A DNA stretch of 35,018 nt from assembly GCA_002269645.1 (NCBI GenBank), contig NIVC01004788.1, forward strand, positions 1 through 35,018. The letters are read 5' to 3'. A model generated the notes under the pieces. The model had not been told where the DNA came from and did not search any database. It saw only the letters and a program-made list of their open reading frames with translations. The position numbers were made by a program, and so were the translations under genes. The number at the start of each line of letters is the position of its first letter. Within the stretch, counting starts at the first letter, position 1. The stretch is from Macrostomum lignano. Lineage: Eukaryota. This document shows, piece by piece, positions 7,298 to 27,956 of the stretch.

Positions 7298-7313
7298 TTT
7301 ATTTAAAATAAAT

Positions 7314-7969: not shown

Positions 7970-8133
7970 TTTTGTCTATTTTTAGAAACAGAAAAATAAA
8001 CACAGGAACAGAAAAAGACTTTCAGACACCAAAGGCCAAACTCCATTGGGCTAAATGTGGCCTGCTCAAAGCGATGATATATTTGTTTAAATTATTACCT
8101 TAATAAATGTTTGATATCAAGTCATGTTGATAA

Positions 8134-8403: not shown

Positions 8404-8518
8404 GCGCCTCTCTGCTTCTTGAACGCGACGTTTTTGAAGATAGTAGTTCTAGGAAAGGGTTTGGTGCGCTCGTATATGATTTTTGTAAACTTAAAACCTT
8501 ATAATGTAAAAACACTTT

Positions 8519-8710
8519 TTAACTAACCTTTAGCTGATTAAAGAAGCGCTCTTCATTAGCCAAATTTTGTGGGTTATACTCCAAAAAGATGTTGATGGCA
8601 ATATCTCTAAACATTGAGTTCCTATGGTGTTGTCGCAAATTTCGCTCACGAATTCTAAGAGTTGCTCTAGCGGCAGTAAGCCTCTCGTGCAAATTCGAGA
8701 AAGAAGGCAT
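8519..8710 (-). CDS. Hypothetical 63 aa ORF, possibly the frameshifted N-terminus of the RING protein
   Basis: Same strand, directly upstream, Arg-rich helical sequence. Confidence 0.35.
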   Translation of the reverse strand: MPSFSNLHERLTAARATLRIRERNLRQHHRNSMFRDIAINIFLEYNPQNLANEERFFNQLKVS

Positions 8711-8818
8711 TGTAGGAATGATATTTTGTAAGAAGGTAAAGTTAGTAGAGAAAAATTACTAGACCTTGCCGCTCGTGGCCATTCATTTATATATTTTTAT
8801 GACAAAACGTCAGACCCC

Positions 8819-8919
8819 GCATTCCATTCAGACCAAAACACGAGACCAATTTTTATCTTTTTATTTTTCGAAATTTTCTTCTCGCGTTTTGGTCTCGCGT
8901 TTTGGTCTGAATGGAATGC
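8819..8919. repeat. 31-bp inverted repeat (1 mismatch) with 39-nt T-rich spacer
   Basis: gcattccattcagaccaaaacacgagaccaa (8819-8849) pairs with ttggtctcgcgttttggtctgaatggaatgc (8889-8919). Confidence 0.9.
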
Positions 8920-8927
8920 ATGACTCA

Positions 8928-9406
8928 GTGTAGCAAGAGTATAAGATAAAAAATATAAAACCCCGAATTCCTGTGTTAGTCATCGAGTGAAGTTTGCCTA
9001 CTTGCTTTGCTATCTTGGTCGGACAATAGCCGACCATATTGTTGCGGTGCGAGCTTGCTTCTGTGTAGCAAGAGTAGATGAAAAATATAAAACCCCGAAT
9101 TCCTGTGTTAGTCATCGAGTGAAGTTTGCCTACTTGCTTTACTATCTTGGTCGGACAATAGCCGACCATATTGTTGCGGTGCGAGCTTGCTTCTGTGTAG
9201 CAAGAGTATAAGATAAAAAATATACAACCCCGAATTCCTGCGTTACTCATTGAGTAAAGTTTGCCTACTTGCTTTGCTACGGTGGTTGGACAATAGCCGA
9301 CCATATTATTGCTCTGCGAGATTGCTTCTGTGTGTAGCAAAAGTAGATGAAAAATATACAACCCCGAATTCCTGCGTTAGTCACTGAGTGAAGTTTGCCT
9401 ACTTGC
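8928..9406. repeat. Tandem repeat, ~132-135 bp unit, ~3.6 copies, in the element's central non-coding region
   Basis: ccccgaattcc recurs at 8961, 9093, 9228 and 9362. Confidence 0.92.
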
Positions 9407-9501
9407 CAGCTTCCTAAGATAGTAATTTTTTGTTTATTGACCCCGTTGGGAGTTTTTGTACTTATGTTGTGTTTTTATGGTGACTATGGTATTATGTCTA
9501 A

Positions 9502-10910
9502 TTATGTGACAATTATGTCTAAAATCGGATAAAGTTGAAAGCCTGAAACAATAAGAACAGTTGATCCTTCAGTGGCTGAATTAATATGCACTCTATAACC
9601 GGAGAATTTTTCGGTGGAAGCTACTTCAAAATATTTCATCACTCCAGGAACTAAACCAGCATTTTCGGTAGAAAAAATATTCCTAAAGTCTCTCTTGTTA
9701 TTGCTCCCTTTCAGAATAAAACTTTTTGGTTGATTTTTTATAATTTCACTACCTACTGCTTTGGTTCCTTTCAATCCGAATTTCCAAATTTGAATAGATT
9801 CAGGAAGTTGTACTTCAATGTAAGAATTGGGTTCATTCCTCGATGCCCATTCTGAATTAGATACTATATAACCCCAATTATCTGACGTTTCAAATGCTCC
9901 TGATGACGCTACATTGAAACCCCTTTCTCTATAGTTTTGACGTGTTGCTAGTGAGGGAATATATCCTGTATAAGATTTGAAACCTAGTCCCCGCCTTAGT
10001 CGCAGCTCCACTGATTCAAGTGCATTGTCTACGTATAGCTTTGGTACAGCTTGAAGTCTATCTATAGGCCACACTAAATCATTAACCACTGTTTGTCTCT
10101 CAAGTAATTCAACTTTTGTAAGCTTTACGGAACCAGAAAAATTAAGAGAATAATGGAAATAATATGAGGGTTTGGGTATTTTTTTCCTAAGATGTGCATT
10201 GCCCCTTCGTAGTTCAATGGGTGCACTTTGTTCAACAGGTGTCCAGTTTGTTCCATTTAGGCTCACACTAACAGACCAACCAGGCCACACCTCTCCTTCC
10301 AACTTTATCTCTACAACTTTCCTAGCTCTTTTCAAAAATTGAAATCGTATCCACTTGTCTGAGTCATCTGCACTGCTCCATTCTGAAGCCGGGTTTGAAT
10401 CTGCAACATGATATGCTGCTGAAGAGTTATGAGAAGCGGTCACTTTCATGTCAGGATGGGAAGCGTTTGAAGTCAGTAATGAAAGAATATTGACTAATTT
10501 CGAACTCTCTGTACCTCCCGCAGTACCTTGCCTTTCTGCTAACAAAGTGTCAATCTCAGTTTTAGAATACATCTTAGTGTCAATCTCAGTTTTAGAATAC
10601 ATCTTAGTGTCAATTCAGTTTTAGAATACATCTTAGTGTCAGTTTCGGTTTTTGTGTAGACATTGTTTACGCGCCCATGAGCATCGTCAATTAATTGTAG
10701 CATGGTGATATTCATTGCGTCACTATCTTCCTTTGAATAAGAGTCTGAAACATTTCTCTTTGCTAACAATAAATTATCTATTTCCTCTCTCTTATATCCT
10801 TCATTTTCATTGATGTATCGATCATCAGCTAACGCTATTGTTATTCCAGGTGCTATATCATTTGAATTTGACGAGTAACCAAATTGATTAGCAGTATTCT
10901 TGTAACTCAT
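9502..10910 (-). CDS. Fibre/receptor-binding-like protein: YxKxEID stalk repeats plus two discoidin (F5/8 type C)-like domains; 1-bp deletion near 10614
   Basis: YKREEID, YSKEDSD, YTKTETD and (MYSKTEIDTK)n repeats. Two domains have SEWxS...W/Y-I-x-x-Q-F/L patterns, plus FILKGSNN and FSGYRVHI. Confidence 0.65.
10546..10640. repeat. Coding 30-bp tandem repeat, ~3.2 copies (MYSKTEIDTK)
   Basis: agtgtcaatctcagttttagaatacatctt repeated; the third copy lacks one base. Confidence 0.9.
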
Positions 10911-11338
10911 TTTAATTGCTGCAAAATTTCATTATAGCTATCTCCTTTATCGATTCGATGTAAAAAGTACAGCGACATTTGACCACAAAATTTCTTATCT
11001 AAAGTTTGAATTTGTTCTTCCATGTCTCCACATATTCTATTCTTTGTGTGATTAAACTTTTCCATAATTTCCAGTGTGGGCGGTAGTGCATAGGAATCAA
11101 AAAAATAAACCTTATCATGAGCTGAAAAGATAGCTGAATGATGTATACCCCGTTCTTTCGAAGTGTGAATATTTGTCATAAAGTAACCATACTGTGGTAA
11201 ATCAACAATTTCATCTCTCATGGCATAGCGAAATGGTTTTAACTTGAGATATTTTGCCCAATTTATCAGATCAATATTAGTCGTAGTGTCAGTCCCAAAC
11301 TTTTGTTTAAATGCATTCCATGTCTCAGCTTCGCTCAT
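10907..11338 (-). CDS. PRO: Adenain-like cysteine protease
   Basis: GIHHSA (His), YFFDSY (Asp), QIQ...FCG (Gln, Cys) in adenoviral-protease order; TAAAAATG start at 11338. Confidence 0.9.
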   Translation of the reverse strand: MSEAETWNAFKQKFGTDTTTNIDLINWAKYLKLKPFRYAMRDEIVDLPQYGYFMTNIHTSKERGIHHSAIFSAHDKVYFFDSYALPPTLEIMEKFNHTKNRICGDMEEQIQTLDKKFCGQMSLYFLHRIDKGDSYNEILQQLK

Positions 11339-11347
11339 TTTTAACAC

Positions 11348-12139
11348 TCATATTTGTCGTACGTGTAGATTTATAAATATTTCCTCGCCATCAAAGTCGT
11401 ATAGAACACCAGACTCATCTTCGATGACAAAGTCGAATGTGCTCAACATGTTTGTAGTTAGTGGTAGGTACACAGGATTTGCAGGCTCTTGAATAATTTT
11501 ACTTCCCATTGGGACAGAGAACGATGGAATTGAAAGAAGTATTTGCTTATCAATTAAATGATTTCCATTGGCTGGATCAGTGATAAAACCCCCTTTGATA
11601 TTGAGACAACGAACCATGATCGCACTTCTAGCTCCGTCTATCCGAGCTGGATTTGGAGCTCTCTCAAATGGTTTCAAATACACTTCCGAATTGAATCCCA
11701 ACAGTCTTCTAAAGTTATTGGAATGTGCATCCCTGAAATCAACTTGATACTCTGTGGCTAACCGTAACTCAACCCTACGCGTGTCTAGGCTTGCACTGAA
11801 AACAATAGCCCCCTCTTTCCAATCATTTGCAGCTGTTAGCAATCTTTGAATCTCGCTTGACAGACTTTTAACTTCCCAAGATCCTGCTTGAATCTTTATT
11901 TTCTTCCATGTTCTACCACTATCCCTCGAGTATCGCAACTCATTATTGCCTCCTTCAATATTGTTAATAGCATCAAAGACTGCAAACTTTTTTATACCAG
12001 CTTCGTATTCTCGATCTTCATACAAATTTATCGGAGTGCCTAGAGTTTGTCGAAATGGGTTTTTAATTGAAAAGAAGTCAAATGTGCGTTGAAACTTTTT
12101 ACTCAAGAGGATGTTGACTTTTTCTATTTCTTTTTCCAT
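11348..12139 (-). CDS. PX: Minor capsid protein (penton, single jelly roll)
   Basis: PINL...EAG, NNI...NN, GSWEV, LLGF, MVRCLNIKG, ILLSIP...PMGSKI...P...YLPL, EDESG...DFDGE pattern typical of Polinton mCP. Confidence 0.8.
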   Translation of the reverse strand: MEKEIEKVNILLSKKFQRTFDFFSIKNPFRQTLGTPINLYEDREYEAGIKKFAVFDAINNIEGGNNELRYSRDSGRTWKKIKIQAGSWEVKSLSSEIQRLLTAANDWKEGAIVFSASLDTRRVELRLATEYQVDFRDAHSNNFRRLLGFNSEVYLKPFERAPNPARIDGARSAIMVRCLNIKGGFITDPANGNHLIDKQILLSIPSFSVPMGSKIIQEPANPVYLPLTTNMLSTFDFVIEDESGVLYDFDGEEIFINLHVRQI

Positions 12140-12141
12140 TT

Positions 12142-12873
12142 TTAAGCAAGTAATTCTACTAGCTCTTTATCAACATTGTTATGTCCCTCTGCTTTTGCGG
12201 CTAGTAATGTCAACACTCTTTCACTGAGTCCAGATCCCGGTTTTACTCGATATCCTGGTGGATTATCTTTCAATATCCTTACTGCTTGCTTATAATTCCC
12301 ACTTGATTTGGCCGCTGGATTTTTACAGTGTTCAATGAGGTTAACATAATCCTGCAATGTTTGCATCTTGAATTGCTTCAGCTCTTCACCATTTTCAGTT
12401 ACTTTAGGCATTTTGAACAACTCTTCAAGATCTTCAGAAAATGGCATTCGGAATTCGTTGACAATGATGTCCCGACCTTGTTCATGGAATTCAACCTCTA
12501 TTACAGATGATCCAAATATATATCCAGCATCAGTTTTTTGAATCCGTATACTAGGCGCTGGTCTTTGAGTTATTGGAATCTTTCCAATTTCTTCAATTAT
12601 TTTGTCAAATACTTCCAGAGGTTCAAATCGTCCTTTTGGTGTACTTAATTGCGGAACTGGAACTTTTTGATTCTGAAGTTTATCAACAAGGTTGGCATTG
12701 AAATCAATAAATTCATCAAGCTTTTCTGTGACAGGTTTTTGAGCTAATGGAGCCACTCTTGCATATAAACTCTCTTCTCCAATTTTCAAATAGCGTTGAG
12801 CATCATTTCTGGATTTGTACGTTTCTCGCTGCTTTGCTAAATTAATGAGTTCTCTTATATATTCATTAGTCAT
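12142..12873 (-). CDS. Conserved Polinton hypothetical protein, 243 aa
   Basis: Intact ORF between ATPase and mCP. C-terminal LSERVLTLLAAKAEGHNN...ELVEL resembles a motif I recall from Polinton proteins. Confidence 0.7.
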   Translation of the reverse strand: MTNEYIRELINLAKQRETYKSRNDAQRYLKIGEESLYARVAPLAQKPVTEKLDEFIDFNANLVDKLQNQKVPVPQLSTPKGRFEPLEVFDKIIEEIGKIPITQRPAPSIRIQKTDAGYIFGSSVIEVEFHEQGRDIIVNEFRMPFSEDLEELFKMPKVTENGEELKQFKMQTLQDYVNLIEHCKNPAAKSSGNYKQAVRILKDNPPGYRVKPGSGLSERVLTLLAAKAEGHNNVDKELVELLA

Positions 12874-12875
12874 TT

Positions 12876-13649
12876 TTACAATGGGATTTTAGTTAGAACA
12901 TCCTTATACAAATCTTGCTCATCCTCATCAGCTCTTGTATTTATATAGATATAGCCATACTTCTTTTTCCAAGCCTCTCTACATTTAGCCTTGAATATAG
13001 CGGGTTCATAATTCGTTTCTATATTTCTAGCAATGTGATTTAAGTTTGTATCTTTTTGTTTAAAGATTATGTAACATGTCGTATTCTCCCTGACAGTATT
13101 GCGATCTAGTTTGGTAAAATTTTGAGCTAGATAAAAACCACAACAGTTTCCATGCCTGCCTCTCTGAAACAGACTTTCCTGAAATGTTTGATTAGCCTCT
13201 CCCAAAACATCGTCCAATATCACACATGTCTTTAGTCCATTATGAAAAATTTCTTCATTTGGAGTATGGGAAAGAGTGACAGGAATTTTCTCTATTACTT
13301 CTGAATTTTCTGATGTGCTTTGCACTCGACCAGGGTTGGCTGCCTCTCGACAAATATGTCTAATATCTTCAGGAGATGCATCCTCACTCACCTGGTAGAC
13401 ATGATAGAGTGAGTTGATAAGAGAAGGTGGGAGACCATTTTCAAAGCCATATTTTAGAAACTGATACTCTGGATCCATTTGAGATGCTCTGGGAACATAT
13501 AAAACTAACTCATTAAAGTCAACTAGTTTTTCAGGACTTGTAAGAATATGGAATAGTAAATATGTTTTACCCGTATTTGTAGCGCCGATAATACAACATA
13601 AAAGAGGATTAGGGAAAATAGGATCATGCTGAAATTTTACTTTGGGCAT
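12876..13649 (-). CDS. ATP: A32/FtsK-like genome-packaging ATPase
   Basis: Walker A GATNTGKT, Walker B VILDD, RGRHGN, LAQN. Confidence 0.92.
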   Translation of the reverse strand: MPKVKFQHDPIFPNPLLCCIIGATNTGKTYLLFHILTSPEKLVDFNELVLYVPRASQMDPEYQFLKYGFENGLPPSLINSLYHVYQVSEDASPEDIRHICREAANPGRVQSTSENSEVIEKIPVTLSHTPNEEIFHNGLKTCVILDDVLGEANQTFQESLFQRGRHGNCCGFYLAQNFTKLDRNTVRENTTCYIIFKQKDTNLNHIARNIETNYEPAIFKAKCREAWKKKYGYIYINTRADEDEQDLYKDVLTKIPL

Positions 13650-13670
13650 TTAAAAAAAGAAAAAATGACC

Positions 13671-15035
13671 TTATTCGACGCGGGTCATTTGATATTCACT
13701 GGTAACTTTTATTACATTCTTTGTTTGTTCAAGAATTAGTGCAAAAGCAGTCAGCTCAACATTTGTTGACTTCTTGATAAATAATTGAATATTCACTCCA
13801 CTCTTGACCAGAAACTCATCTTGAGCTGTTAGATCAAAGCAAAAGATTGGATAGATGGTTAGAAAGTCTTGTTTATTGAATGGAGGAGTTACACCGAAAC
13901 GGCTGCAGATGTCTTCGTACATTTCATACGCTCTGTGAATGTCTTGAGCTACTGGATCAATTTCAACATAATCATTCGGATACATCACCTGATTTAATCT
14001 GACTTGAAGCTGGGTTATTTTCACTGCATTTGCTCCAGTTTTGTAAGACACATACTTGTGATCATTAACTATATATGATGGGTTGTTTACGTCATATTTG
14101 AAAGCTACAAAGATTGCAAGTGGCATATTGGAGATGTTGGCTATGTTCCATGTATATGGACTTCCTTGAATGAGTTGTGGTGGAACCGTTACCCTCTCTG
14201 GAAATGATACTGTAATGTCCTTGTTGAGTGATTTTAGAAAAGCTGCTTCAGCACTGGGTGACAAAGTAATAGCAGGGATCCAAATCTCAAAGCTATTAAT
14301 AGTTAACTTAGCTTCCGTCCCGGCAGCTCCAAAGAAAATTTCAGCATCGTTAGTCTTTCTTGTCCATGTGAATTTATATTTAATTCCTTTGCTAATCTTC
14401 TGCCAATCAAGGAACCCAATGAGAGGTGTTAATGATAGTTTGATTGTTCCACCTCTGTTTGGAGCATTAGTGACATTGTTATAATTTTCAAGCCTCCTAA
14501 TGTATCCAGTATTCGAATCCTTCTTATTGAGTCTATTTTTCATAGCGATTGCTGCAGTTCTCACAGCTTCAGCATCTGCGTTGTTTGCTAGAGGTATATC
14601 AGAAACAGTCCCAGCATCTCCAGTGTCTGGAATCCATCCGTATGCTTCTCCAACTTCATTCATTAATTTTGAGTACATTACGGACTTTAAGATTGTGTCA
14701 TACTCTCCAGGATCATTATAGACTTTCTTTGTTCCTCCAATGTCAACTATGAGTTGAGAGAAAAGTCTCATAGGCCAATTATGTTCTAGAGTAATGTTCG
14801 TATTCAAGTCGGTGTTATCTCGTTGTGTTATTGAGTATTTTATACAACCGAATGCCTCTGACATGAGAATGTATGACTCTGTTGAATTGACTTCATGAAC
14901 TATTTGACCTCCTGCAACATTGAGATTATTAGTGCTACCTGGAGTTGGAGAAATCTTAATATAGTCTTCTTTCTTTTTGAAAAAGCTAAAAGTTTTGTCC
15001 TCATATATGCTCAGTATATCCTTTTTGTTCTCCAT
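13671..15035 (-). CDS. PY: Major capsid protein (double jelly roll), 454 aa, intact
   Basis: Size, position and motifs (RLFSQL..DIGG, IGFL.W, EIWIP.I.LS, P.AIFV.F, QV.LN...YP, YPIFCFDLT) match Polinton MCP. Confidence 0.85.
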   Translation of the reverse strand: MENKKDILSIYEDKTFSFFKKKEDYIKISPTPGSTNNLNVAGGQIVHEVNSTESYILMSEAFGCIKYSITQRDNTDLNTNITLEHNWPMRLFSQLIVDIGGTKKVYNDPGEYDTILKSVMYSKLMNEVGEAYGWIPDTGDAGTVSDIPLANNADAEAVRTAAIAMKNRLNKKDSNTGYIRRLENYNNVTNAPNRGGTIKLSLTPLIGFLDWQKISKGIKYKFTWTRKTNDAEIFFGAAGTEAKLTINSFEIWIPAITLSPSAEAAFLKSLNKDITVSFPERVTVPPQLIQGSPYTWNIANISNMPLAIFVAFKYDVNNPSYIVNDHKYVSYKTGANAVKITQLQVRLNQVMYPNDYVEIDPVAQDIHRAYEMYEDICSRFGVTPPFNKQDFLTIYPIFCFDLTAQDEFLVKSGVNIQLFIKKSTNVELTAFALILEQTKNVIKVTSEYQMTRVE

Positions 15036-15078
15036 TTTTATAAGAGAAATTTCAACTAAGCTTCATGAGGTCTAAGAA

Positions 15079-15507
15079 TTATCCCATTACCCTGTTTCTC
15101 CTTTTCAACTTTAAAGTCTTTAGCAGCCACTTGACTGCTTCGCTGGGTACTTGTTCGACTCTTTTAGCCGCATCAACTAATACTCCACTCCCTTGAGCCT
15201 TTTTCAACTCTTCTAGTTTTTGCCGTTCAATGCTTTCTATTGTCTTATTATGTTTAGCATTGTTGGCTGTATTAACACTTTTTGCAATCATTGTACCAAC
15301 TCCTGAGGCTGCTCCGATACCACCCAAAATTGCTGGTAGTAAGCCTAATAGAGGAATTATTCCACCTTCATGTTCTTTCTGTTTCTCTTGCAATTCTCGA
15401 ATCTTCTCTTTAGAAAGATATTGCTTTTGCTTATTTACAGTAACATATCTTGGTTTTCCCTCTCGAACATATCGATTGAGTCTTGCTTCAGTGTTTTTCT
15501 CGCTCAT
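15079..15507 (-). CDS. Small basic protein with an adenovirus pX-like hydrophobic segment
   Basis: EGG|IIPLLGLLPAILGGIGAASG; TAAAAATG start. Confidence 0.65.
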   Translation of the reverse strand: MSEKNTEARLNRYVREGKPRYVTVNKQKQYLSKEKIRELQEKQKEHEGGIIPLLGLLPAILGGIGAASGVGTMIAKSVNTANNAKHNKTIESIERQKLEELKKAQGSGVLVDAAKRVEQVPSEAVKWLLKTLKLKRRNRVMG

Positions 15508-15515
15508 TTTTAAGG

Positions 15516-15938
15516 TCAGAATTTCTTCAAACCATTGCCTTGTCTCAAAGACACTTGAGACTGTTCTGCTGTTCCTAGAGCCTTTTTAACAATATCTTGA
15601 ATAGCCTTATTTGATTGAGAAGCTATCTGTTGCTCTTCTTCCATTCTTTTCTTTGCTTCTTTATCTCTACGTTTCTTTTTAATATATTCCAGTTCCTCAC
15701 CTGCTTTAGACATGTCACTGTATGATTTCTTCGCATCGAATATGTTCTTCGCTGTGGTAGCTGTTTTACCTATTGCATCAGCTCCACTCACAATTTTACT
15801 TCCATGATTTGATAAAAAGTTTGTGACACCACTGATCATATCACCAATTCCTTCACCCTCTTTATCAGCTAGTAGTTGTGAATCAGACGTTTCAATCTGA
15901 CCTTTCGCCCGTTTGCAGTTTGTTCGATAGGCGCTCAT
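15516..15938 (-). CDS. Small virion-type protein with an amphipathic, adenovirus protein VI-like helix
   Basis: TAAAAATG start at 15938; GEG|IGDMISGVTNFLSNHGSK. Confidence 0.6.
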   Translation of the reverse strand: MSAYRTNCKRAKGQIETSDSQLLADKEGEGIGDMISGVTNFLSNHGSKIVSGADAIGKTATTAKNIFDAKKSYSDMSKAGEELEYIKKKRRDKEAKKRMEEEQQIASQSNKAIQDIVKKALGTAEQSQVSLRQGNGLKKF

Positions 15939-17165
15939 TTTTAGTTGAAAAATTTGCTGGTAGAAGCTGGGATTTGTAAAATGATCCAATGATTTCTTCT
16001 CCATTCTCATCCTCAATAATGTAGGTTATGGGATTGGAGTAAACTATTTTCTTTATCCTAAACACTTCTGAAATTTTCCAATATCCTCTTCGACCCTTTT
16101 CAAAGTGCTCCTTATATCTATAGATATGAACTTTGTCACCTACTTTGAAGTTTGGTTTCTCATTTGAATACTCGAAAGTTGGCTTTGGTACTCGCTCAGG
16201 ATGTTTAGATGCTTCTGAAGGAGTTATCAGAATCTCAGAATGGATTGTGTTGTTGTATTTTTCAACAATAGCTGGCAATGTGTGGAGCCACTTCTGATTA
16301 CCCTGTAGATCAAATTCAAACCAGAGTTTATTTGTGAGAGTACGATTGAACCTCTCAATCATTGCATTCTTGGACTCGCCATAAATTGAAAACATCTTGT
16401 TAATATATTCACCCTTTCATCCTTCTTTCTAATGTTGTCTTTTGAAAACGAGTATAGCTTGTACATATGCTGATTATAAAACTCCTTGCCTTCATCTACA
16501 CAAAGTCTCTCTGATCGTCTTCCTGATTCCTTAAATACTTTTTGGAAAGCTTCTGCAACTTCCGCTCCCGTCTTTGTTTTCAAAGGAACTGCCCAGGCGT
16601 AACGTGTAAAACCATCTATGATAGTTAGAGCATATTTGTAACCTCTTTCGGGCGGTAGGATAATGATATCTGCATGCCAAATTGTGTCTTTTGCATAGTG
16701 AATCATTTTTCTAAATACTCTTGGCTTTCGATATTCTTTATGCAATTTTACTGCATCTTCATAGCTAAGACCCTTACCATAAATTGTTAGACAGTCAATA
16801 CAATTGTTGGGGTTGTGAGTATGAATGCCTAATCCAAACCGAACTTTAGCCTTGATAATACGCTTTACTAGATTTCGAATGAGTCTCTCTTTCACAGACA
16901 AGTCACTGGTTGGAATAGCATCTAAATCAGCTATCATTTTTTCATCAGCTATATGCTTCTTTGCTAGAGCTTCCTCTGGATTTGAAGAAGTGTTTTCAGC
17001 ATCTCTATAGTTTTTGTCATGATAGTAAGCAGTCCAATCGATTGGGTTAATTGGTAGACTGTCATACCGAGGCCGGTCTGTAATTGGATTGAGTCTCTTG
17101 TCTAAATTTGTACCCGGCAGTTGTTCCTCAATCTTTCGAAAGAGGCTGGACTTTATCTTAAGGCT
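15892..17165 (-). CDS. INT: PLA2-like domain fused in frame to a retroviral-type (RVE) integrase; frameshift near 16400; 5' end unresolved
   Basis: IDWTAYYHDKNY...IADE (PLA2-like); WHAD, IDGFTRYAW, CVDEGKEF, IERFNRTL (DDE triad); C-terminal FKVGDKV...FEKG...YW...GSFY. Confidence 0.88.
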
Positions 17166-17232
17166 TCATCAGGATTGACCAGATCCTTCAGCCCCACCCC
17201 CATTAAGTCTCTGAACCTTCTCCATATCCTTG

Positions 17233-17919
17233 TCAACTTCGTTCGGACTTAGGAGCTTGGCTGCGGATTTCCACCATGTCCTCAAGCTTGTTACCATCGA
17301 ACCATAGGTTCGCGGACGAAGTCCGATTGGGAACAGGAATTACCTGTGTTCCTTCAGAAGATTTCTCAACTGAAGTGGTACTTGAGGCTGTTATTGACGT
17401 ACTAGAATCGGACGGAGTTCCCGCAATTTGAAGGTGTCGCCAATCACTAAGCACTTGTTTAATGTTGGTTATAATGTTTTTGTATTGATCACCATAAAGA
17501 AATTTCAATGCAAATTCTCCTGTTATAAGGGTGATTCCATTGTCTAGTAAAATATTCTTAGGTTCCTTTGTAGTTTTATTGATGCATACATAATACAACT
17601 GATAGATGGGATAAGAATTTTTATAGTCTAATAGTTTCTGATAATTCCTTTCACGACTTGATGAACTGTCCGTGTTATCAGAAGATTTAAGCTCTAATGC
17701 AATCTTTCGCTCAACGTGAACCAGGTCAATCTTTTTTACCTTCTCGAATCCAAAATAATTTTCTGCTAATATTTCATATAGTCTGCCTAGTCTCATTTGA
17801 ATAACTTTAATCTTGTGTGAAATTATTAACTCTTCTTGGAAAAGATCATGAAGAATTTGATCATGCCCAACCTTATCATCAATTGGTTTCAGAAGAATTT
17901 CTCGAATTGTTTGCTCCAT
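17233..17919 (-). CDS. PD-(D/E)xK endonuclease, Eco47II/Sau96I-like restriction endonuclease candidate, followed by a Ser/Thr-rich tail
   Basis: K-x2-Q-x2-LG-x2-YE helix, IDL, and ELKSSDNTDSSSS match the pattern I recall for RE_Eco47II (Q..IG..H.. / D / EIK.K.NT.NSSS). TAAAAATG start like the other element genes. Confidence 0.68.
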   Translation of the reverse strand: MEQTIREILLKPIDDKVGHDQILHDLFQEELIISHKIKVIQMRLGRLYEILAENYFGFEKVKKIDLVHVERKIALELKSSDNTDSSSSRERNYQKLLDYKNSYPIYQLYYVCINKTTKEPKNILLDNGITLITGEFALKFLYGDQYKNIITNIKQVLSDWRHLQIAGTPSDSSTSITASSTTSVEKSSEGTQVIPVPNRTSSANLWFDGNKLEDMVEIRSQAPKSERS

Positions 17920-18077
17920 TTTTACTATAGAAACTTTAACAAGTGCTTATTTGATGACTAGCAAGGACATTGACTTCCTCACTCAGGCCACTACGTAACC
18001 TGCAAAAGAATACCCTGGAATATGAAGTTCTCCTGGGTATTTTCCAGTGGCGAAGATGGGTGGTAGTTTTGTTATAG

Positions 18078-18643
18078 CTGACTGAATATCTAAAGCATTT
18101 CCTAGAAATAATGGTTTACTGAAGGCCATTTTATATATATAAAATTTACTATCGTTGAATTGGATGACACTTTCATATTGTATATACCTGAAATTGCATT
18201 AAATTGACCCGTGAATCCAACTTTTCTCATGGTTTTAGAGCTGGAATCGTGAAAATTGCACTTTTTAAAAAAATTAGAAAATCACAAAAAATCGCTGTTT
18301 TCAGACCATTTTCACCTGTTTTTAGTCATTTTTCACTTATTTTTAGTGATTTTCAAAATGAGTGAGGGCATGAGGGCGAGGGCACCCCCCCTTTTTAAAA
18401 GTATAAAAATTCCGGAAAATCTGTGTTCGGTGAAATATTCCACAGGCCAATGCCCCCCACATGCCCTCACCCTCAACACCCTCACTCACAGATATATGTA
18501 TATTTACATATCACACACCCACTTGAATCCATGACCTCCTGGTAGTAGTAGTATGTTATAAGGGGCTGAGTCATCCAGCGAGCTGGCGCGCAATGCGCCC
18601 GAGCAATTAAGTGTGGCGCAGCCCCTTATAACATACTACTACT
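18078..18643 (-). repeat. Right terminal inverted repeat (~566 bp)
   Basis: Reverse complement of 389-948. Confidence 0.95.
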
Positions 18644-18649
18644 TATAAA
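18644..18649 (+). repeat. Target-site duplication, right copy (TATAAA)
   Basis: Matches 383-388. Confidence 0.9.
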
Positions 18650-19859
18650 AAATGTAGGTAGTTTTTTTTCTAAGAGTGAGATATATACAAAAAATTGCAC
18701 AAAAATTATACACAACTTTCTATTCCAAAATTGCTATGCAAATATTCTATCTTAGTATATAATAATATAGCATATAGGGCATATAGATAACACTTAATAA
18801 ACAGGTCTATAATCCACTTAACAAAATACTGTTTTAACAAAACACAGTATTTTGTTAAACTAATATGATTAATAAATAAAAGCAAAAAGAATCAATAACT
18901 AAACAAATTAAAAAAAGGATACTAACATATATATTTATGGCAGTGCTTATTATTACCTTTGTCATAATGCCAATGGTTACATGTTATCGATATAGTATTA
19001 AGCCAACAATGCCCTGCTTATTTGACTTATGCACAACTGCTAGCCAACCCTGCCCATCTAGCCACTGTAAATTGTGAAGAATATAAATATAATACTAATT
19101 AGCTAAATTTTATATGTTATGAAACATTTTGCCTTAATAAGATAATCATAGTTATTCCTGCTATTTATCCAAAATTTGCTTTAGCTTTAGGGTTGCTTTA
19201 GGGTTTTTTTTCATAAGTTGCATTTTTTTTAAAAAGTAAGTTGCATGGCTAGTATAAATCAGGGGGGTTACATATGTTTGATTTGAATAATAGCTAAATT
19301 ATAAATATATCATAGGCCTATTCTTAGCATATGCCATACTAATAAACAATATTATCCATGTGGTACCATGTCAAAAATGCTTTGCTTATTTACATAGCAG
19401 CTAAATTATAATATTTGGTATTAACTTGGAAAATTACATTATATTAAAATAGGCTAAACTAAAAAAGGTAATAGTCCAATTCAGTAACAGCCACTTTGGT
19501 AACAAATGATGTCCAATTCAGTAATAGCCATTTTGGTAAAAGCCATTTAGGTTAAAATTAGTGGAAATACAATATATATTGATTGATATACTCAAAAAAG
19601 ATTTTGCAAACAAACTTTAAAGAAAGAACAACAAAAAAAGTAATTAAGATACATTCTCACAAACTTTGAGATTTGGATTGATAATGAAAACTAGGCCTAA
19701 GCATATTTTAGTCTACATGTATTTTTATTTTTATTTCCAGTTGTGGCAGATGCATATATATAAGCTAAGATATCCTGTTGACCAAATATTGTGTATATTA
19801 GAATCTCTGAGTTAGCAACTTCATTTACCAAATCTACTTTTTTCTTCATTTATAATTAG

Positions 19860-20570
19860 AAATACTTATCCCCACAGTCCCATGTCAATAATTCCAATTT
19901 TATCCACACAAATCCGTGTCAATAATTTCCAGCTTATCTCTATGGCAGCTCATTGGGATAGAGAACCTTAAAATGAATCTGTATAAAAATCTGTTCATTT
20001 GTTTGTTTTCACTTTTCTACAAATCTTCCAAATAAACTAGCCTACTGAATACTGAATAGTATTGAGTACTTTGTTAAAACTTTTTTGTCATTAAAAGGGT
20101 TAATTTTAAATATTTGCTTAGCTGCCAGCTTTGCTTAGAATGACTAAACAACCTTAAGATTGAGGCAAATGAGACTTGCAAAATTCAAATTTCAAAATGT
20201 AATACTTGTAATAATGATAATTATAATTTAATGTCAGTACACAAAACTAAACAACTGCACAATCTTAGCTGTGGGGAAAAGCTGAAAATTCTTGACACAT
20301 CTGTGTGGATAAAATTAGAATTATTGACATGGCCTATAGACTTGAATAGTGGCAGCTATTTCAATAAGCTGCAGTGAGAATAAGCTGTAGAAGTTAAATT
20401 ATCAACATGGATCCACGTGGATAAAATTGGAATTATTGATATAGCCTATAGACTTGAATGGTGGCAGCTGTTTCAATAAGCTGCCATGCAGGGGATAAGC
20501 TAAAAATTATCGACATGGATCTGTGGATAAAATTGGTATTTTTGGCATAGGACCGTGGGGATAAGCACTT
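19860..20570. mobile_element. Degenerate MITE-like element with ~90-bp imperfect TIRs and ~110-bp internal subrepeats
   Basis: 19860-19950 matches the reverse complement of 20479-20570 (roughly 80% by eye). gtggataaaatt recurs at 20305, 20417 and 20523. Confidence 0.6.
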
Positions 20571-22560
20571 CCTTTATAATTACTTACTTCAAATTTCAAT
20601 TTTCAACAATTGCTTAATGTTCTTTGCTGCCTTTAATTTTTTTTACAAAGTTAATGCACAAATTTAACCAAATTAGAATATGCTCAAAGAGAAGTAAATC
20701 TAAACATTCATAGGCCTATAGCTTATTACAAATATGTCTAAGAATTATTAATCATATAATATTATAACTTATATCATTGAAAATATCTAACTAGACTAGA
20801 AGGGTAAAGATAAGCCCTCTGCTTATTAATCAAAATAGGTCCTTATGAAACCCAATAAAAATAAAAATACAAAGTGTAAATAATATAACATTATATGTGT
20901 AATGAAATATGCATTTATATTTGTATTGCTAGTATTTTTTAAGAATTTATACTAATGTAACATATTCTAGGAATGTAATATACCAACTATTTACTTACTG
21001 TAATTTTTATTATATTATTTGTTTTGAATAGTGTTTTGTATGCAAATATAAGGTAAAACCAGTTTAAACCAGTTAGGCATGCATTGTACAATTGGTCTCT
21101 CAGGTGGCTACAAATAGGCCTAACCTTTAGACACTTCATCATAGACATAGACGTCACACTACTTGCCATAGACATAGACTTATATTAGAATATTACATTA
21201 TTTAAGTTCACTAAGAGTGTAGTTAATATTGCAACTATTATTACTATAATTACAATTAGCCTAATCCCAATACTAATTTTATCCAATATATAATAGTTAT
21301 AGTGAGTTAGTGAGCCAGTGTATGCCACCTAATGCTAATCTAACTAGATCATTAATATTATAATATTTACAGTCAACCTATATTAACCTACACAAATATT
21401 AAACCTGATTGCCCTGGCAGCGTCTTTGTTTCAATTTCTTTTACTCAACTCCAGTATAGAGAATTTGAATAGCAACCACAAGAAGTTAATATATTACATA
21501 AATATTGTTATTTAGCTTTAGCTATTATGCAAATAAGCAGGGCACTATTGGCATGACATCATGTGGATAATATTATCAGGATTAGCATGGGGATGTAGGA
21601 ATAAACACTGATATTATTCTTGCATTTGCAAGGAGCCAAGATGTTAGGCTTAGTTAAACTTAGTATCTTTCATATTTGGTAATATTATTCAGCTTAAACA
21701 TAATGTATAAATATTTCTACTTGAATTTGAACCTTGCAGTGTGTGAGTATGTAGATTAGAGTACATTTTCAATTTATTTCCTATCTTTCTTAGCTAGCAC
21801 TAACCTAACACTTAATTTTTCAGCACCAAAATATACTATTACCAAAGTGGCTATTACCTAAGTGGACTTTTACTGGGACATCCAAATCTTTTGATGAACC
21901 TGGAAAAAATTGCAAACGACTATGCAATATTTAGACATGAATACTGAGCCAGAGCCACCCCCTCTTCTGCCTCACCCACACTGTCTGCCTCATTATTTTG
22001 TGGGCCACACGTTTTGCTAGGACAGTTTTTTACTTTTTATTGTTTTAGCCGTAGCTTAAAATTACACAGAGTTCTGTTGAAAAAATCTGATAGGAACAAA
22101 ATGGTTGCATTTATTTTGTGTTTAATAATTAGTAAGTAACAAAAAATGAAGCCTAAGGCCAAAGGAAACATAATTTTAAATTTTGACTTGAATTCTTTCT
22201 TCTTGGAAAAATATTATTTTGCAATTTTTTGAATTAGCAGGAATTTCATTAACGATGCATAACGAATTACTTTTAAAGGCTCTTTCCTATTGGTACTCTA
22301 TATTAGTGCAACATTTGTGGTTCGTATTATTCGATTTATTTAAAGTAATGAAAGATGGCAGTGTAAACAAGTATTAAGGCGCTACCGAAGACTTTTCTAA
22401 AATTATCTAGTTGGTTGAATACAACTGAAAAAGTTTTCGACGCGAAAGTAAGTGCTTGTGAACAAAAGTATGCACTACTACCAATATGATCATAGTGTTA
22501 GTGGTAATTGTAATACAACAACAACAACAAAATACGCTGTCAAGATGGCAAAAGTCAGCG

Positions 22561-25390
22561 TCACAGGGCGCGCTTCATGGCTTGGGCGCGAACAAAGGCC
22601 GCGCCACCGGCAGTGTCCGGGGCGCCGGCGTCAGCCAGCAGACAGTCGACATAACGCCGAGTTCGCGCTTGAACTCGCCGGTAGGGTGCCTGCAGCGTGA
22701 GCAGCAGCACCTCCTGCACCGGCTGTGGGCAGTACGACTCGGCGCGGATGAGATGGCCTGCGAGCTGGAGTCGCCGACGGCGCAGTAGATCACTTGGACG
22801 TGGCAGGCCAGCGCGGCGATAGAGTGCCGCGTTGGTGACTCGCTCGACGCCGATGTTGAAGGCGGCGCGCAGCAGGCCAGCGTGCGCCGCATCGACTTGC
22901 TGTTTGAGTGAGTCCGTCAGCGTCCAGGTCTCGGCGTTGTACAGCAGGACGGTCTCGATTACCGCCTGGAACAGCGCCGCCCTCTGGCGGTCCGGTAGGG
23001 CCTCGAACTGCAGGACTCCCTCACAGAACGAAAGGCAGCCCAGGCAAGCCCGCGGCGGCGTCGCAGGTCCTCGCGAGCGTCTGGAACCAGACCGCCGAGG
23101 TAGACGAACTGCTGACATCGCGGGAGTTCGGTCGCCTGCCCGTCAGCGCCTCGGCAGAATATTGCAGCCTCGGCACGCAGAGCACAACGGTCTTCTGTGT
23201 GTTGACCACCAGGCCGACACTCGCCGCAACGGCAGCTAGCCTGTCCAGCTGCCGTTGGGCGCCCTCGACGGTCGAGGACAGCAGGGCGAGGTCGTCGGCG
23301 TAGCCAAGCACGCTGAGCCGCTTCTCCGGTTGACGTCGACCTACGCGTCGCCGCAGCAGAAAACCGTCGTCGTCGGTAGGAAGAGCAGTCCGCAGCACCC
23401 AGTCAAGCACCAGGACGAACAGGAACGGCGCCAGCGTATCTCCCTGAAGTACTCCGGAGGATGTCTCAAAGGAGTCCGATAGGCCGTCCGGTGTTGTCAC
23501 AGCAGCTGTCGTATCACGGTACATCGCCATGATGGCGGAGATCAGCTGCTCGGGCACGTTGTACGCGCGGAGCACCATTGGAAGCACGGCTCTGACAACC
23601 GAGTCGAATGCCTTCTTGAAATCAATAAAGATTAGAATCAGGATCGACTGGCGAATCCGCGCCTCCTCGATGACTCGGCGAAGAGCCAGGATCTGCGCCA
23701 CTGTGCCGCGATGGGGCCGGAACCCGTTCTGCTCTGGGCGCAGGTACGGATCCAGCACGGGCTGCAACCGCGAAAGCAGCATCCGGTTGAACAGCTTCGC
23801 TGCACAGGACTGAAGGCAGATGTGCCCGTGGTGCCCGGCCTAGTGGTGCCCGGCTTCTTTGGAACAGCAACGATGTGCGCCGTGGTCCATTCGTTGGGCG
23901 CCGCCTCACCGAAGAGCACGCGGTTCATCACTCTGGCGACCTCAGCGGCCACACAGAGGATGCGCAGCGCCTCGATGGGCACCTCGTCCGGACCCAGCGC
24001 TTTCCCGCCCGGTGACTGCTGGGCGAGCTTGACAACGTCGGCTGCGTTGACTGGGCCTACGCTGAAACTCTCCTCTGCCGGCAACGGCGTCTCCGGCGGC
24101 AGCGTCAGACTGTCTGGCAGCGGGGGTGGCGGCGCGTTGACGATGGCGGCGAAGAACTCGCGCAGCTCGTTCCTGCGCTCATCCGGAGTGTCACCAGCCA
24201 GGTTCAGCGGATTGCGCCGCTTTCGCCCCGTCAGAGCGTTGATGGCGGACCAGGCCACGCGCCCTCTGGCATCGGGCCCAGCGGCAGAGACAGCCTGAAT
24301 GGCGTCATCGACAGCCGCTTGTTGGCGCTGCAGGTAGACAGCCGCCAGAGCTGCCTCTGCCTCGCGGGTTGGTCACCTGCTCAAGCGGAGCCTCTCCAGA
24401 TCTTCCCTCGCTGCCTGAATCGCAGGGTCGTCCTGCCAGACCGGCTGCCCACGTTGAGCCGGTTGCATCATCGGGACTGCTTGCTCCGAGGCGGTTCTGA
24501 CTGCAGCGCACACTTCCGCATACTCGGCACTTCCACGCTTGTCGCCCAGCGCGGTGTTAAAGGCGCTAGCAAAGCAACGCTGCGTATCGGTGGCTCTGAG
24601 CGCGCGGTAGTAGCGCCGCGGTGGCCGCTTCGGCGGACGGTAGAGCGGATCGCGAAGGTTGAGGTCGCAGATGAGGAGCCGGTGATCGGACCGCAGAGCC
24701 AGCGGCTTGATGGTGCGGCAGTTGACGGCGCGACGACGCTCACGGAAACGCACGAGCACGTGGTCGAGCTGTGCTTTTCTCCGGGTTGCGTTCCTGCCAC
24801 GCGCGTTCCGTCGCCTCCGCTTGCAGCCCACGAAGGTTGCGAGACCGCTCAGTGGCTTGCGGAAGCGGGTGTGTGCCAACACCATGTCCTGCCTCTCCAG
24901 GAAGTCCTCCAGTGCCTCGGTGTTGTTGTTCCCGCGTGGCGTCACGAACAGCGACCTCTCGGACCTACGCAGGACTGCGTTCAGGTCTCCGAGGACGACC
25001 GCTGTGTCACGCTGCGCCATCGCCTCTACCTGCACTGAGAGCTGCTCGAAAAACTCTTGAGCCTCGTCAGGGCGTGTGGCAGGGCGCGCGTACGCGCAGA
25101 ACAGGCGAGCATTCCGACTGCGTAGCCGGACGTCGATCCGAAGCAACCGGGGGACAGGGAGACGCAGCGACAGCTCTGCTGCAGCCTCGGCCCGATCAGC
25201 GCTCCAACTCCTCCACTGCCTCGCTGGTCCGCAGAAGTATAGTAGAGGGTCCACCCGGCGCCCAAGTCCTCACAATGAAGTCCCGGGTCGGCCTTGATAG
25301 ACACCTCCTGCAGCGAGATGATGTCGCCAGCACCCCTCTACGCCAAGCAGCCTTGAGAGTGCGGCAGTTCAGCGTCCCGACCCGAAGCAT
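22561..25390 (-). pseudogene. APE endonuclease plus reverse transcriptase ORF, split into at least 5 fragments as assembled
   Basis: LRVGTLNCRTL, LGDLNA, LDHVLV, SDHRLL (APE); GPDE, PKKPG, QNGFR, FIDFKKAFDS, GVLQGD.L.P.LF, YADD, GL.VN.KT (RT); RRRLQLAGHL C-terminus. Confidence 0.9.
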
Positions 25391-25525
25391 GCCCTGTGGT
25401 ACAGCTTGGGCTCGATGCAGTTGTGCCTCACGGTCCCCGGCGCCACCCGGAGGATCCGAGTGGACCCGCGCGGCAGCTCGACGGGCGGCGCCACGCAGCC
25501 GGCCTCATCGGTTCCGCTCACGCCG

Positions 25526-25569
25526 GCGCTCAACACGCCGACGGGCGCTCAACACGCCGACGGGCGCTC
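25526..25569. repeat. 19-bp tandem duplication in the retrotransposon 5' UTR
   Basis: gcgctcaacacgccgacgg x2.3. Confidence 0.85.
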
Positions 25570-25588
25570 CGCTGCCCTCGCTTGGTCC

Positions 25589-25679
25589 TGCCGCATTTGG
25601 CCGCCGCAGCAGTTAAGCGCGGCTCTCCGCTCTGACCACGAGGAGGTAGCGGCATTTATCTGCACCGTGGTGCAAAGGC
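25589..25679 (-). ncRNA. HDV-like (delta-like) self-cleaving ribozyme candidate
   Basis: P3 ACC/GGU enclosing L3 UCCUCGU; GG for P1.1; P2 UGCCGC/GCGGCA; P4 GCCGC/GCGGC; J4/2 GGCCAAAU; P1 GCCUUUG/CAGAG-C (one base short). Confidence 0.7.
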
Positions 25680-27956
25680 AACAAAATGAAAATGACGACA
25701 CGAGTTTTTAAAGTTTTTGAAGCGTTGTTAGTATACGAGCTCGTATGTGCGGCCTTACTTTTTGTATTGAATAAGTTTGAAATATTTTTTTCGTGTTGAG
25801 AAATAAATTAAGGCTCGCTTTCTGGTTAGCGGTAGTGCTAGTGGTTACTGTTGCAGTGCCTTTCCATAGCAGCAGGGCCTTTAGCACCAAGGGCTTAGCA
25901 CCAGATGGGCTCCAGCTAAAGCACGATGCAGCATATCTTTCCCCCACCTAGCTCTTTGGATTTGCACTTGTTGCCTTTGAGTTACGGGCGTTGTTGTACG
26001 TGAGGCTGTTTACTAATGGAGTAAATCTAGCAAAAAGCCACTTCTCAGCTTCCCTTCGTGAATTCGAAAACAATTAGTGATCTGGCTCGCCAAAGTGCAT
26101 AGAAAATTAATGCATGCAGCTACTCTCTCTGCATTTGCGTGAATGGCAGCTAACCGCTATTACAGTGTATAGTCATGCAGTCCGGTTTCAATGTTAATCA
26201 TCCTGCATATTTGCTACATGTGGACAGCAGGCAGAATACACAATATACGGAAACTCGCGGACAAGCCATCATCGCCCTGGCTGGCAATTTGGTGATTTTG
26301 CGCAGATGCTTCGCATCAACCATATATAGTTGTGGGCTTGGATTTCAACACAGCCAGCGCTGGCCCGAGCGAGCTGCAGCTGTCCCACACCGCTCAAATT
26401 CTAACCGCCAACAAATGTGCGATGCGGGATTGCTTTTTTAGGCCTCGCAGTGTTTGAGCTCTCGGTTGAAAAATATGGTGGCACATCTGGCGGCCGGCAC
26501 ATCTGCTTCTGTATTAGATGAAATTTGACTGCTTTAAGCTGCGCTTGAGCAAACAGAAATTCATAACAGTAGAAGTCAACGCTAAGTGCAGTGTCTGGCT
26601 TCAGGAAGCCGAAACTGTTATTGATTTCGTCCTGCGAAATCGGACCTGCTCAATAGAAAAGCAGTGAGAATATATGGCGGGATTGGCTAAAGAAGAACCT
26701 ATATTGTCTGGTGGCTTTTTAATAAATAATAATACTTAACGCTTTACTTAACCACAGAGCGCCTTGGCTACTACCGCAAGTCAACTAGGCGACAGTCAAC
26801 CTGCAGCCAGCCAGACGACAATTTTGCTGTTATACGTCAGTTCCACTGACTCCGGAGCACGCGTGTCCACGACCGTCTCATCATTGGTACTGAGGTACAC
26901 TGTGCGAGTACCTCCTGCGCACACTGGGCCCTGGGGTAGGCCCTTATTGGCATCCATGCAGAGAGAGGTCACTGGTGCGAGAGACGGACGGACGAGTTAC
27001 CGCTGAGCAGTCCTGCCGGGCAGTTGGGTTACTCTGACCGATAAGGAACAACCAACTGAAAGGCTGATCAGTTTTAAGCATCGGAAACACCCAAGTACTA
27101 AGTTAGTGCAAGCAATGCGAAAGTGCTTCCCATGCCAGTGTGTTGTTGGCCTTCATCAATAATGCACGCCCTGCGGCAGGACAAACCGCCAAGTCGGGCC
27201 GCCCCCCAGCCGCTGAAGGCCCAGCGATCTGTGCACAGCTTTGTGTTGAACAGCTGGAATTCATTGCGCAAAATGGGGATCCCGGGCGGAGGGCCTTAGG
27301 GCAGCGGGTCCCAGATGTTGTTTGCCATTTATCTATTGCCAGTTTGGCATCCCAAGAGGACTGACGGAGGCCAGAGGCTTTAGGAACTCGGTGGGGGGGA
27401 CGCCCGATTATTGGCAGGCTGATCGGGGGTCGGTGGTCTGAGTATCGACTCAGCATCGACGCCTTCGCTCATGAATTATTCATTGCCGGGTCTTCTGGAG
27501 GCAGCAGCAAAACTTGAAATCCACTGGAGAGAAACTCCGTCTCCCCCGGGGCCGCTTGTCGCCACGCGGCTCCCGCAGTTGAGCCGTCGGGTTTTTTTCG
27601 ACCATTCGGCCAAAAGAAGAGGAATTTCTTCCCCTCCGGACCGGCCAGTCTGCGGCATCCGCTCTCTGGAAATGGTGAGACGGGTAGAGAGCGGAGGAGA
27701 GGACTCAGGCGGGAGAGAATGGGTTTACCCAGCTGCCAGGAGCCAACTGGATTCAAGCGGATGGCAGAAGGGGAGAGAAAAAAATGGGAAGAATTGAGTG
27801 AGCCGGCCGGAGCTTGAGTAGATTTTTTGGGGGTCTCATTTTCCCCCTCCTTGGCTGGCTCTCGTCTCCCCTCTCACACGAAGCTGCGGCAGGCTGAGGG
27901 GCTCAGTTTAAAAAGCCCAATGCTGCATCTTGGGGAGGGCTGAGCTGCCGCCTGAG

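Follow-up and report, generated by a model that had tools for sequence, protein, structure and literature searches.

Restriction endonucleases of the Eco47II family have been described as bacterial (PMC3424549) and as paired with a C5 methyltransferase (PMC3424549, PMC10305163), and homologues of Eco47II have been assigned to the site GGNCC (PMC10305163). The locus reported here lies in a stretch of 35,018 nucleotides of Macrostomum lignano DNA (contig NIVC01004788.1 of assembly GCA_002269645.1; hereafter the window), in which an integrated Polinton-like element (389-18643) carries an open reading frame (ORF) on the minus strand at 17233-17919. The ORF belongs to a mobile group I intron, which is inserted in the gene for a PLA2-integrase of the element. 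Like the type IIP enzymes of the Eco47II/Sau96I type (PF09553), its product belongs to this family, has the PD-(D/E)xK motif and is accompanied by avoidance of the motif GGNCC, which matches their site (PMC10305163); unlike them, it is found in a eukaryotic virus-like element, without a methyltransferase and inside a group I intron. From the comparisons given below, we consider it probable that the ORF encodes a methylase-free nuclease serving both restriction and homing, with an element that would be self-immune by site avoidance together with splitting of the remaining site by the intron.

Amongst solved structures, the best match to the AlphaFold2 model of the protein is EcoO109I (PDB 1wtd, 1wte), which cuts RG^GNCCY, a site that contains the GGNCC core (PMC3089450). 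The two proteins nevertheless share only 13-14 % identity with no sequence-level match, EcoO109I differs from the window nuclease in its shifted catalytic Glu (PMC3424549), and the element avoids all GGNCC and not just those in the RGGNCCY context. A second group of related systems comprises homing endonucleases from group I introns, I-Ssp6803I among them; here too, a PD-(D/E)xK nuclease is encoded in an intron that is inserted inside the presumed recognition site (PMC3384342, PMC3943268). However, known homing endonucleases have long, rare targets and do not require genome-wide avoidance, whereas here the evidence points to a 5-bp site of which both genome and proteome have been purged.

In phages, a free-standing homing endonuclease may act together with an intron in 'collaborative homing' (Bonocora & Shub 2009 and Zeng et al. 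2009, as summarised in PMC11296320). Both end states of the process, as outlined in that summary, are seen amongst the loci compared here (related loci bear L numbers): the nuclease is free-standing beside its target gene in L005 and L006, and intron-borne at its own predicted cut site in the window, L002-L004 and L009. The intermediate that follows from the same summary, in which a free-standing nuclease would adjoin an intron lacking an ORF, was not seen among these relatives and, unlike in the summarised scheme, the free-standing forms have lost the site by amino-acid replacement and not by an intron. Introns matching Rfam RF00028 have been listed for Polinton-like viruses (PLVs) of Paulinella, Rhodomonas and Desmodesmus, where they lie in a short gene located upstream of that for the capsid and encode a protein that was not annotated (PMC12220804). 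The present case is similar in its RF00028 match inside a PLV gene, and differs in that the host genome is that of an animal, the intron interrupts the integrase gene and its ORF has been identified.

In phages it is the sites of host enzymes that are avoided, and the giant viruses of algae rely on methylation for their protection. The element is unlike both, as it appears to avoid the site of its own methylase-free enzyme, and this down to the amino-acid sequence, while it resembles phages such as a staphylococcal podovirus (PMC6346686) in that short palindromic sites have been lost as a protection against restriction. In the literature consulted, no link was found between Eco47II-like genes and Polintons, virophages or adintoviruses, and the adintovirus paper mentions neither a restriction enzyme nor a group I intron.

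The nuclease domain and the avoided site

An earlier note on this DNA, made from the letters alone, had read 17233-17919 as a nuclease ORF with PD-(D/E)xK features, and much of this stands. The ORF was recovered at its full length of 228 codons, of which codons 1 to about 160 (17440-17919) are a protein domain; it is, however, not a plain free-standing ORF, as it lies in a group I intron and a third of it is ribozyme read-through. Over its first ~160 residues, the product is an Eco47II-family restriction endonuclease of type II. The Pfam family RE_Eco47II (PF09553) matches residues 24-157 of the window protein with 25.5 bits (E 1.2e-5; cut-off 25.9) and 13 of the 14 aligned homologues, with scores in relatives of 34.4 bits (L006), 34.2 and 48.3 bits (L010) and 42.5 bits (P0100). 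Across the 14 sequences, which are 44-63 % identical, D65 and E76-L-K78 are invariant and E49 nearly so; these catalytic residues sit on strands 66-68 and 73-78 of the AlphaFold2 model and are retained in divergent nuclease subtypes. The confidence of the model (pLDDT) is about 90 for residues 1-160, and Foldseek against the PDB returned EcoO109I as the top match (E 5e-5, probability 1.0, template-modelling score 0.5), followed by other PD-(D/E)xK nucleases.

For residues 166-228 the confidence of the model drops below 50. The last ~68 codons of the ORF are a read-through of the ribozyme core (P3-P8), which accounts for both the apparent conservation of this tail and its disorder in the model. 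A separate protein domain in the tail was considered and rejected, given that it is disordered, absent from free-standing homologues and coincident with P3-P8. In agreement with this, a search of 1.84 billion representative proteins yielded 296 clusters at E<=1e-3, nearly all of which are 170-200 residues long and match profile positions 1 to ~160 only.

Other searches returned little. A phmmer comparison of the ORF with PDB sequences gave spurious tail matches only, the fold search of BFVD gave no viral structure at E<=1e-3, IMG/VR yielded no matches to either the nuclease alignment or the capsid protein, and a scan of JGI metagenomes gave a single 1.3-kb contig (L004). No DNA methyltransferase family matched any of the 20 ORFs of at least 100 residues in the element at E<=0.1, in line with what had been noticed by eye. 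As a side observation, a distant relative, P0062 (542 residues, from an NCBI contig of 4.5 kb), consists of a C5 cytosine DNA methylase (263 bits) fused to an Eco47II-like domain (41.7 bits).

The absence of GGNCC from the element, first reported from a manual scan, was reproduced by a script count of zero in 389-18643. All 43 GGNCC of the window lie to the right of the element; there are none in 1-20549, and the first three, named previously, are exact (20550 GGACC, 20838 GGTCC and 22002 GGGCC). With a guanine-plus-cytosine (GC) content of 0.364 over the 18,255 bp of the element, Markov models of orders 0, 1, 2 and 3 predict 20.1, 21.3, 19.2 and 14.5 sites, respectively, so that the rough expectation of about 17 was fair. 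GGNCC is the most depleted among 208 palindromic patterns tested (Poisson P 6e-10) and is missing irrespective of the flanking bases, which implies that the effective specificity of the predicted enzyme is 5 bp and not a long, rare site of the homing type. Similar motifs are kept: GGCC, GGATCC and CCWGG occur 17, 4 and 17 times, as the manual scan had indicated in kind, CCNGG is found 22 times against 21.4 expected, and AGNCT (57/65 observed/expected) and AGNCC (63/74) are retained in the lineage of the window. The right flank (18644-35018) is undepleted, with 43 GGNCC against 32-39 expected. Two further copies of the element in the same assembly (L012 and L013) show the same pattern, with no GGNCC against 16-17 expected and 8 and 9 sites per 6.4 kb in their flanks.

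The avoidance extends to the encoded proteins. When synonymous codons were shuffled within the coding sequences of the element, keeping the proteins fixed, the mean was 6.5 GGNCC and zero was reached in 0.15 % of shuffles (P(0) 0.0015). The codons of the dipeptide Gly-Pro are always GGN-CCN and hence always form a GGNCC site; every Gly-Pro has therefore gone from the open frames of the element (0 against 9.6 expected), while the reverse dipeptide Pro-Gly, made of the same residues, is present at 11 against 9.6 expected. The suggestion made earlier, that the element may encode a GGNCC cutter and be immune by site avoidance instead of methylation, is supported by the family and fold of the protein, by the zero count, by the lack of a detected methyltransferase, by the absence of GGNCC from relatives that carry the gene and by the undepleted host flanks.

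The group I intron and its insertion point

The gene that hosts the intron spans 15892-18129 (minus strand) and encodes a PLA2-like/rve integrase in two exons. The 5' exon (17998-18129) has 44 codons and ends in GCAGGT, the final U of which forms the U.G pair of helix P1. It is followed by a group I intron of 880 nucleotides (17118-17997), with splice sites fixed by exon homology, whose last base is G (omega-G), and by the 3' exon (15892-17117), which starts with CCGGGT (Pro-Gly-Thr), is open in frame from its first base and holds the rest of the PLA2-like domain as well as rve. This exon carries one frameshift in the window copy, which is missing from both sister copies, L012 and L013, where the exon is a single open frame of 424 codons. 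Predicted splicing would join GCAGGT to CCGGGT in frame and so restore the PLA2 domain. The joined exons match Phospholip_A2_4 (E 2e-9) at residues 34-111, across the junction at residues 44/45, in addition to rve, and the product is collinear end to end with the uninterrupted homologues P0014 (74 % identity) and P0018-P0021. On tblastn comparison with L002, L003, L009, L012 and L013, the alignment stops at residue 44 of the 5' exon and resumes at residue 1 of the 3' exon.

Rfam RF00028 matches the minus strand at 17510-17127 with 88.9 bits (E 1e-21; gathering cut-off 50), and the model also detects the homologous introns of L004 (80.6 bits) and L009 (65.3 bits). The ribozyme core (P3-P9) occupies 17118-17439, into which the nuclease ORF reads up to its stop at 17233-17235; the ORF lies between P2 and P3, its start being 78 nucleotides downstream of the 5' splice site. 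P1 (17984-18002) pairs the exon strand CAGGU (18002-17998) with the internal guide GCCUG (17988-17984), and all five pairs are formed in five distinct sequences, with one compensatory change from C-G to U-A and an invariant U.G; the helix is also recovered by minimum-energy folds in six loci. U at position -1 and a terminal G are present in all five complete introns. The P2 hairpin (17961-17982) is the same in six loci although formed from different sequences; it is drawn from single-sequence minimum-energy folds only, since pairs could not be counted reliably on alignment A4, where a gap is offset by one column. The placement of P1/P2 by Rfam at 17510-17440 was rejected, as it falls inside the coding part of the nuclease and has mismatches, whereas 18002-17961 fits both the exon homology and the compensatory changes. 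The true P1/P2 thus lies ~490 nucleotides upstream of the Rfam placement, and automated intron bounds would be off by that much.

The insertion point coincides with the site that the enzyme is predicted to cut. In the window, L002, L003, L004 and L009, the ligated exons read GGT|CC, a GGNCC, exactly where the intron is inserted. The two intron-less and nuclease-less integrase alleles, L007 (74 % identical protein) and L008, each have a single GGNCC, and in both it is formed by the homologous Gly-Pro codons (GGG|CC and GGC|CC). This Gly-Pro lies in a conserved G-P-G loop of the PLA2-like domain. It survives in the product of the window because the intron sits between GGT and CC, so that the GGNCC site is missing from the DNA and would be present only in spliced RNA. 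Taken together, the family, the fold, the site avoidance and the insertion site indicate that the enzyme most likely cuts GGNCC.

Most gene starts of the element share a TAAAA-ATG context (e.g. 3074-, 12139, 12873, 15035, 15507, 17919, 18129), in which TAA is often the stop codon of the preceding gene. The start of the intron ORF has the same context, which suggests that it uses the same expression signals as the other genes of the element.

Relatives and competing explanations

Comparison with relatives shows that the avoided motif differs between nuclease lineages. GGNCC is absent from L006 (0/8.4 observed/expected), L009 (0/4.8), L005 (0/4.2) and L002 (0/2.9), and when pooled with the window the count is 0/41.6 (P 9e-19); Gly-Pro is likewise absent (0/4.4, 0/4.2, 0/6.2 and 0/4.1, respectively). 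L006, a marine metagenome contig, and L005, a Polinton bearing polymerase B (DNA_pol_B_2), both have a free-standing nuclease directly upstream of an intron-less integrase in which the Pro of the G-P-G loop is replaced (TGTGT in L006, TGAQT in L005). Besides this integrase-adjacent copy, L006 has a second, more divergent Eco47II-like paralogue at 3908-4651 (plus strand; E 4e-14 to the family profile). The element in L005 (8800-21356) lacks a wider motif, RGNCY, altogether (0/57.3), with its own flank being normal; split by component, the counts are 0/4.2 for GGNCC, 0/30.4 for AGNCT and 0/22.7 for AGNCC plus GGNCT. RGNCY is also low in L011 (3/38.6) and in the decayed L010 (10/74 in 2300-16668), and the nucleases of the L005/L010/L011 lineage are only 29-32 % identical to that of the window. 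Since the lineage of the window keeps AGNCT and AGNCC and that of L005 avoids RGNCY, the avoided motif tracks the nuclease subtype, and this is the strongest argument that each element avoids the site of its own enzyme. A single sample, ERZ25070786, holds both the GGNCC type (L001, L003) and the RGNCY type (L005). We know of no characterised enzyme with RGNCY specificity.

Two side observations concern the same relatives. Ty3/gypsy-type retrotransposons interrupt or flank copies of the element in long-read contigs (L003:6343-9975 and L010:415-2220), and these are the copies with one regained GGNCC (L003) or a kept G-P-G site (L010). CTNAG is about halved or worse in several elements (L005, L006, L010, L011 and L014), including the nuclease-less Hydra adintovirus (17/41.8), which is probably a codon or stop-codon effect and not restriction avoidance.

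The mechanism that we favour would run as follows. The predicted enzyme cuts, most likely, GGNCC, and the element, which has no methyltransferase among its ORFs, would be protected by holding no such site, at the cost of Gly-Pro in its proteins; its last Gly-Pro would be hidden at the DNA level by the intron, whose anatomy is apparent and whose splicing is predicted from the exons. Intron-less alleles in related elements would be cut at GGNCC and would copy intron and nuclease during repair, i.e. homing, and other GGNCC-rich DNA, such as competing elements or the host chromosome, may also be a substrate while the element is active. The ancestral state may have been a free-standing nuclease beside an intron-less integrase with a replaced Pro, from which the intron-borne form could have arisen when an intron at the enzyme's own cut site later took in the nuclease gene.

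The explanation that survives best beside this one is host shut-off, in which the main target is host chromatin, with DNA degradation and nucleotide scavenging during lytic replication, and the location in an intron is incidental. Free-standing, intron-free versions in L005 and L006 do suggest a role of the enzyme beyond intron homing, sites are abundant in the host flanks, and restriction-modification systems have been reported in giant viruses of algae (PMC12220804). On the other hand, the insertion site is exactly the predicted cut site in five independent introns, and intron-less alleles carry the site there, as expected under homing but not required for host shut-off. One role does not preclude the other, and we regard host shut-off as the main function as rather unlikely. 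The earlier note had named host chromatin and co-infecting viral DNA as possible targets; because the predicted site is the intron insertion site, homing and competition between elements appear to be better-supported targets than host chromatin.

Less probable still, and in our view doubtful, is the possibility that the avoidance of GGNCC and RGNCY is imposed from outside, by a host nuclease or by one from a co-infecting virus, in which case the intron ORF would encode a homing endonuclease of the ordinary kind, whose long target happens to contain GGNCC. Long sites are indeed normal for homing endonucleases (PMC3943268), L011 is depleted (GGNCC 0/3.1, in addition to its low RGNCY) with no nuclease gene visible in its 6.9 kb, and counts are also somewhat reduced in the Hydra adintovirus, which has no nuclease (GGNCC 2/4.1, Gly-Pro 2/7.0). 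However, the avoided motif shifts with the nuclease subtype even within sample ERZ25070786, host flanks are undepleted, GGNCC is absent whatever its flanks, as fits a bare 5-bp specificity, and both the enzyme family and the closest fold indicate GGNCC. It is more improbable again that a degenerate restriction-like fold now acts as an intron maturase or DNA-binding factor, the avoidance being a relic of an older conflict. Although the window protein scores just below the Pfam cut-off and the M. lignano copies are partly decayed, the E...D...ExK residues are invariant or nearly so in the 14 aligned sequences and kept in divergent subtypes, the free-standing homologues cannot be maturases, and the avoidance is complete and not eroding where genes are intact, while the decayed L003 and L010 have begun to regain sites. 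A composition artefact from AT-richness, codon usage or amino-acid composition, which the 36 % GC of the element and the small expectations in AT-rich relatives (2.9-4.8) might suggest, was tested and rejected, with at least 14.5 sites expected under all Markov orders 0-3, the codon shuffles, the Pro-Gly and CCNGG controls and the pooled count of the five lineages all speaking against it.

Several points weigh against the favoured reading of a methylase-free, self-avoiding restriction and homing nuclease. The window protein lies 0.4 bits under the curated Pfam cut-off, NCBIfam has no family match for any of four nuclease versions, Rfam misses the introns of L002 and L003, and the cleavage specificity is an inference from family, fold, avoidance and insertion site. 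Among the relatives, L010 has two Eco47II-like genes and yet an intact G-P-G site, and L003 has one GGNCC, both being decayed copies; the depletion of L011 with no visible nuclease gene counts here as well, and the sole long control without a nuclease, the Hydra adintovirus, is AT-rich and weak. A 5-bp cutter would cut the host about every 0.4-0.8 kb of flank and, because the host flank is so dense in sites, intact ORFs in integrated copies imply a tight silencing that the model does not explain. The favoured reading would also require that a protein be translated from within a group I intron in a transcript made in the nucleus, and the M. lignano copies, with their broken genes, may be inactive.

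The element, its surroundings and its significance

The identification of the element as a Polinton stands in part. Hallmarks of Polintons/Mavericks are present, namely inverted repeats, a 6-bp duplication, an rve integrase, a double jelly-roll capsid and a packaging ATPase; however, neither a protein-primed family B DNA polymerase nor an adenovirus-type protease has a Pfam match in the element, which has a primase/D5-like helicase instead. Because this primase-helicase is present and the search for a protein-primed polymerase was negative, the element is more safely called 'Polinton-like'.

The element is bounded by the target-site duplication TATAAA (383-388 and 18644-18649). Its left terminal inverted repeat, of ~565 bp (389-953, plus strand), faces the right one (18073-18643, minus strand), which contains the start of the 5' exon of the integrase; the arms (I1-I5) are 85-98 % complementary. 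At ~895-970 (plus strand) the left repeat holds a truncated duplicate of that exon, with its first ~17 codons followed by divergence to a stop. The double jelly-roll major capsid protein (13671-15035, minus strand; Pfam DJR-like_dom, E 2e-13) is 100 % identical to a Macrostomum lignano protein record, and next to it lies an A32-like packaging ATPase (12876-13649, minus strand; Pox_A32, E 7e-6). The primase/D5-like helicase region (4845-7351, minus strand) consists of two ORFs in different frames, one with Prim-Pol, PriCT_2 and D5_N and the other with DUF5906, and represents either two genes or one gene with one break. A large protein with a terminal Endonuclease VII domain, i.e. a second nuclease, is encoded at 1755-3074 (plus strand), as it is in L006 (4651-8103, minus strand). 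Tandem repeats occur at 8928-9406 (132-bp unit x3.6) and 10546-10652 (30-bp unit x3.6), and an inverted repeat of 31 nucleotides at 8819-8919.

The sister copies L012 and L013, which lie on other contigs of GCA_002269645.1, are 98-99 % identical to the window copy, and their homology to it ends exactly at 18643. A RIO1 kinase gene adjoins one of the two. Several other genes are fragmented in these copies, while the nuclease ORF is unbroken in all three M. lignano copies. The host flank at 22000-35018 is a mosaic of a GC-rich retrotransposon lacking long terminal repeats (non-LTR) and satellites: the reverse transcriptase lies at 23021-23782 and the endonuclease at 24373-25254 (both on the minus strand), followed by a 21-bp satellite (x33, 29587-30272), (AGTT)n (x269, 31097-32171) and a 14-bp satellite (x121, 33283-34978).

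Restriction and homing enzymes are usually separated by the length of their sites and by the protection of the carrier, and this locus joins the two classes. With the activity predicted here, an enzyme of a restriction family with a 5-bp site would serve as an intron-borne homing nuclease that is protected by avoidance and not by methylation, and the occurrence of free-standing and intron-borne states in one gene neighbourhood bears on how mobile introns gain nucleases. The loss of all Gly-Pro points to a nuclease constraining amino-acid sequence, with the intron hiding the DNA site while the peptide is kept. The locus also extends the reach of group I introns to a protein-coding gene carried by an element that resides in the nuclear genome of an animal. 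The pairing of nuclease subtype with avoided motif is a computable signature that can be checked over thousands of Polinton-like genomes and that predicts new specificities such as RGNCY.

A broader reading, for which we see the arguments as evenly balanced, is that lineages of Polinton-like viruses in animals and protists use methylase-free restriction enzymes, whose specificity differs from lineage to lineage (GGNCC, RGNCY), as weapons against one another and perhaps against their hosts, their self-immunity being purely a matter of site avoidance that leaves proteomes without Gly-Pro. If true, the window would document how a restriction enzyme gives rise to a mobile intron, the nuclease gene having been taken in by an intron at the sole unavoidable site.

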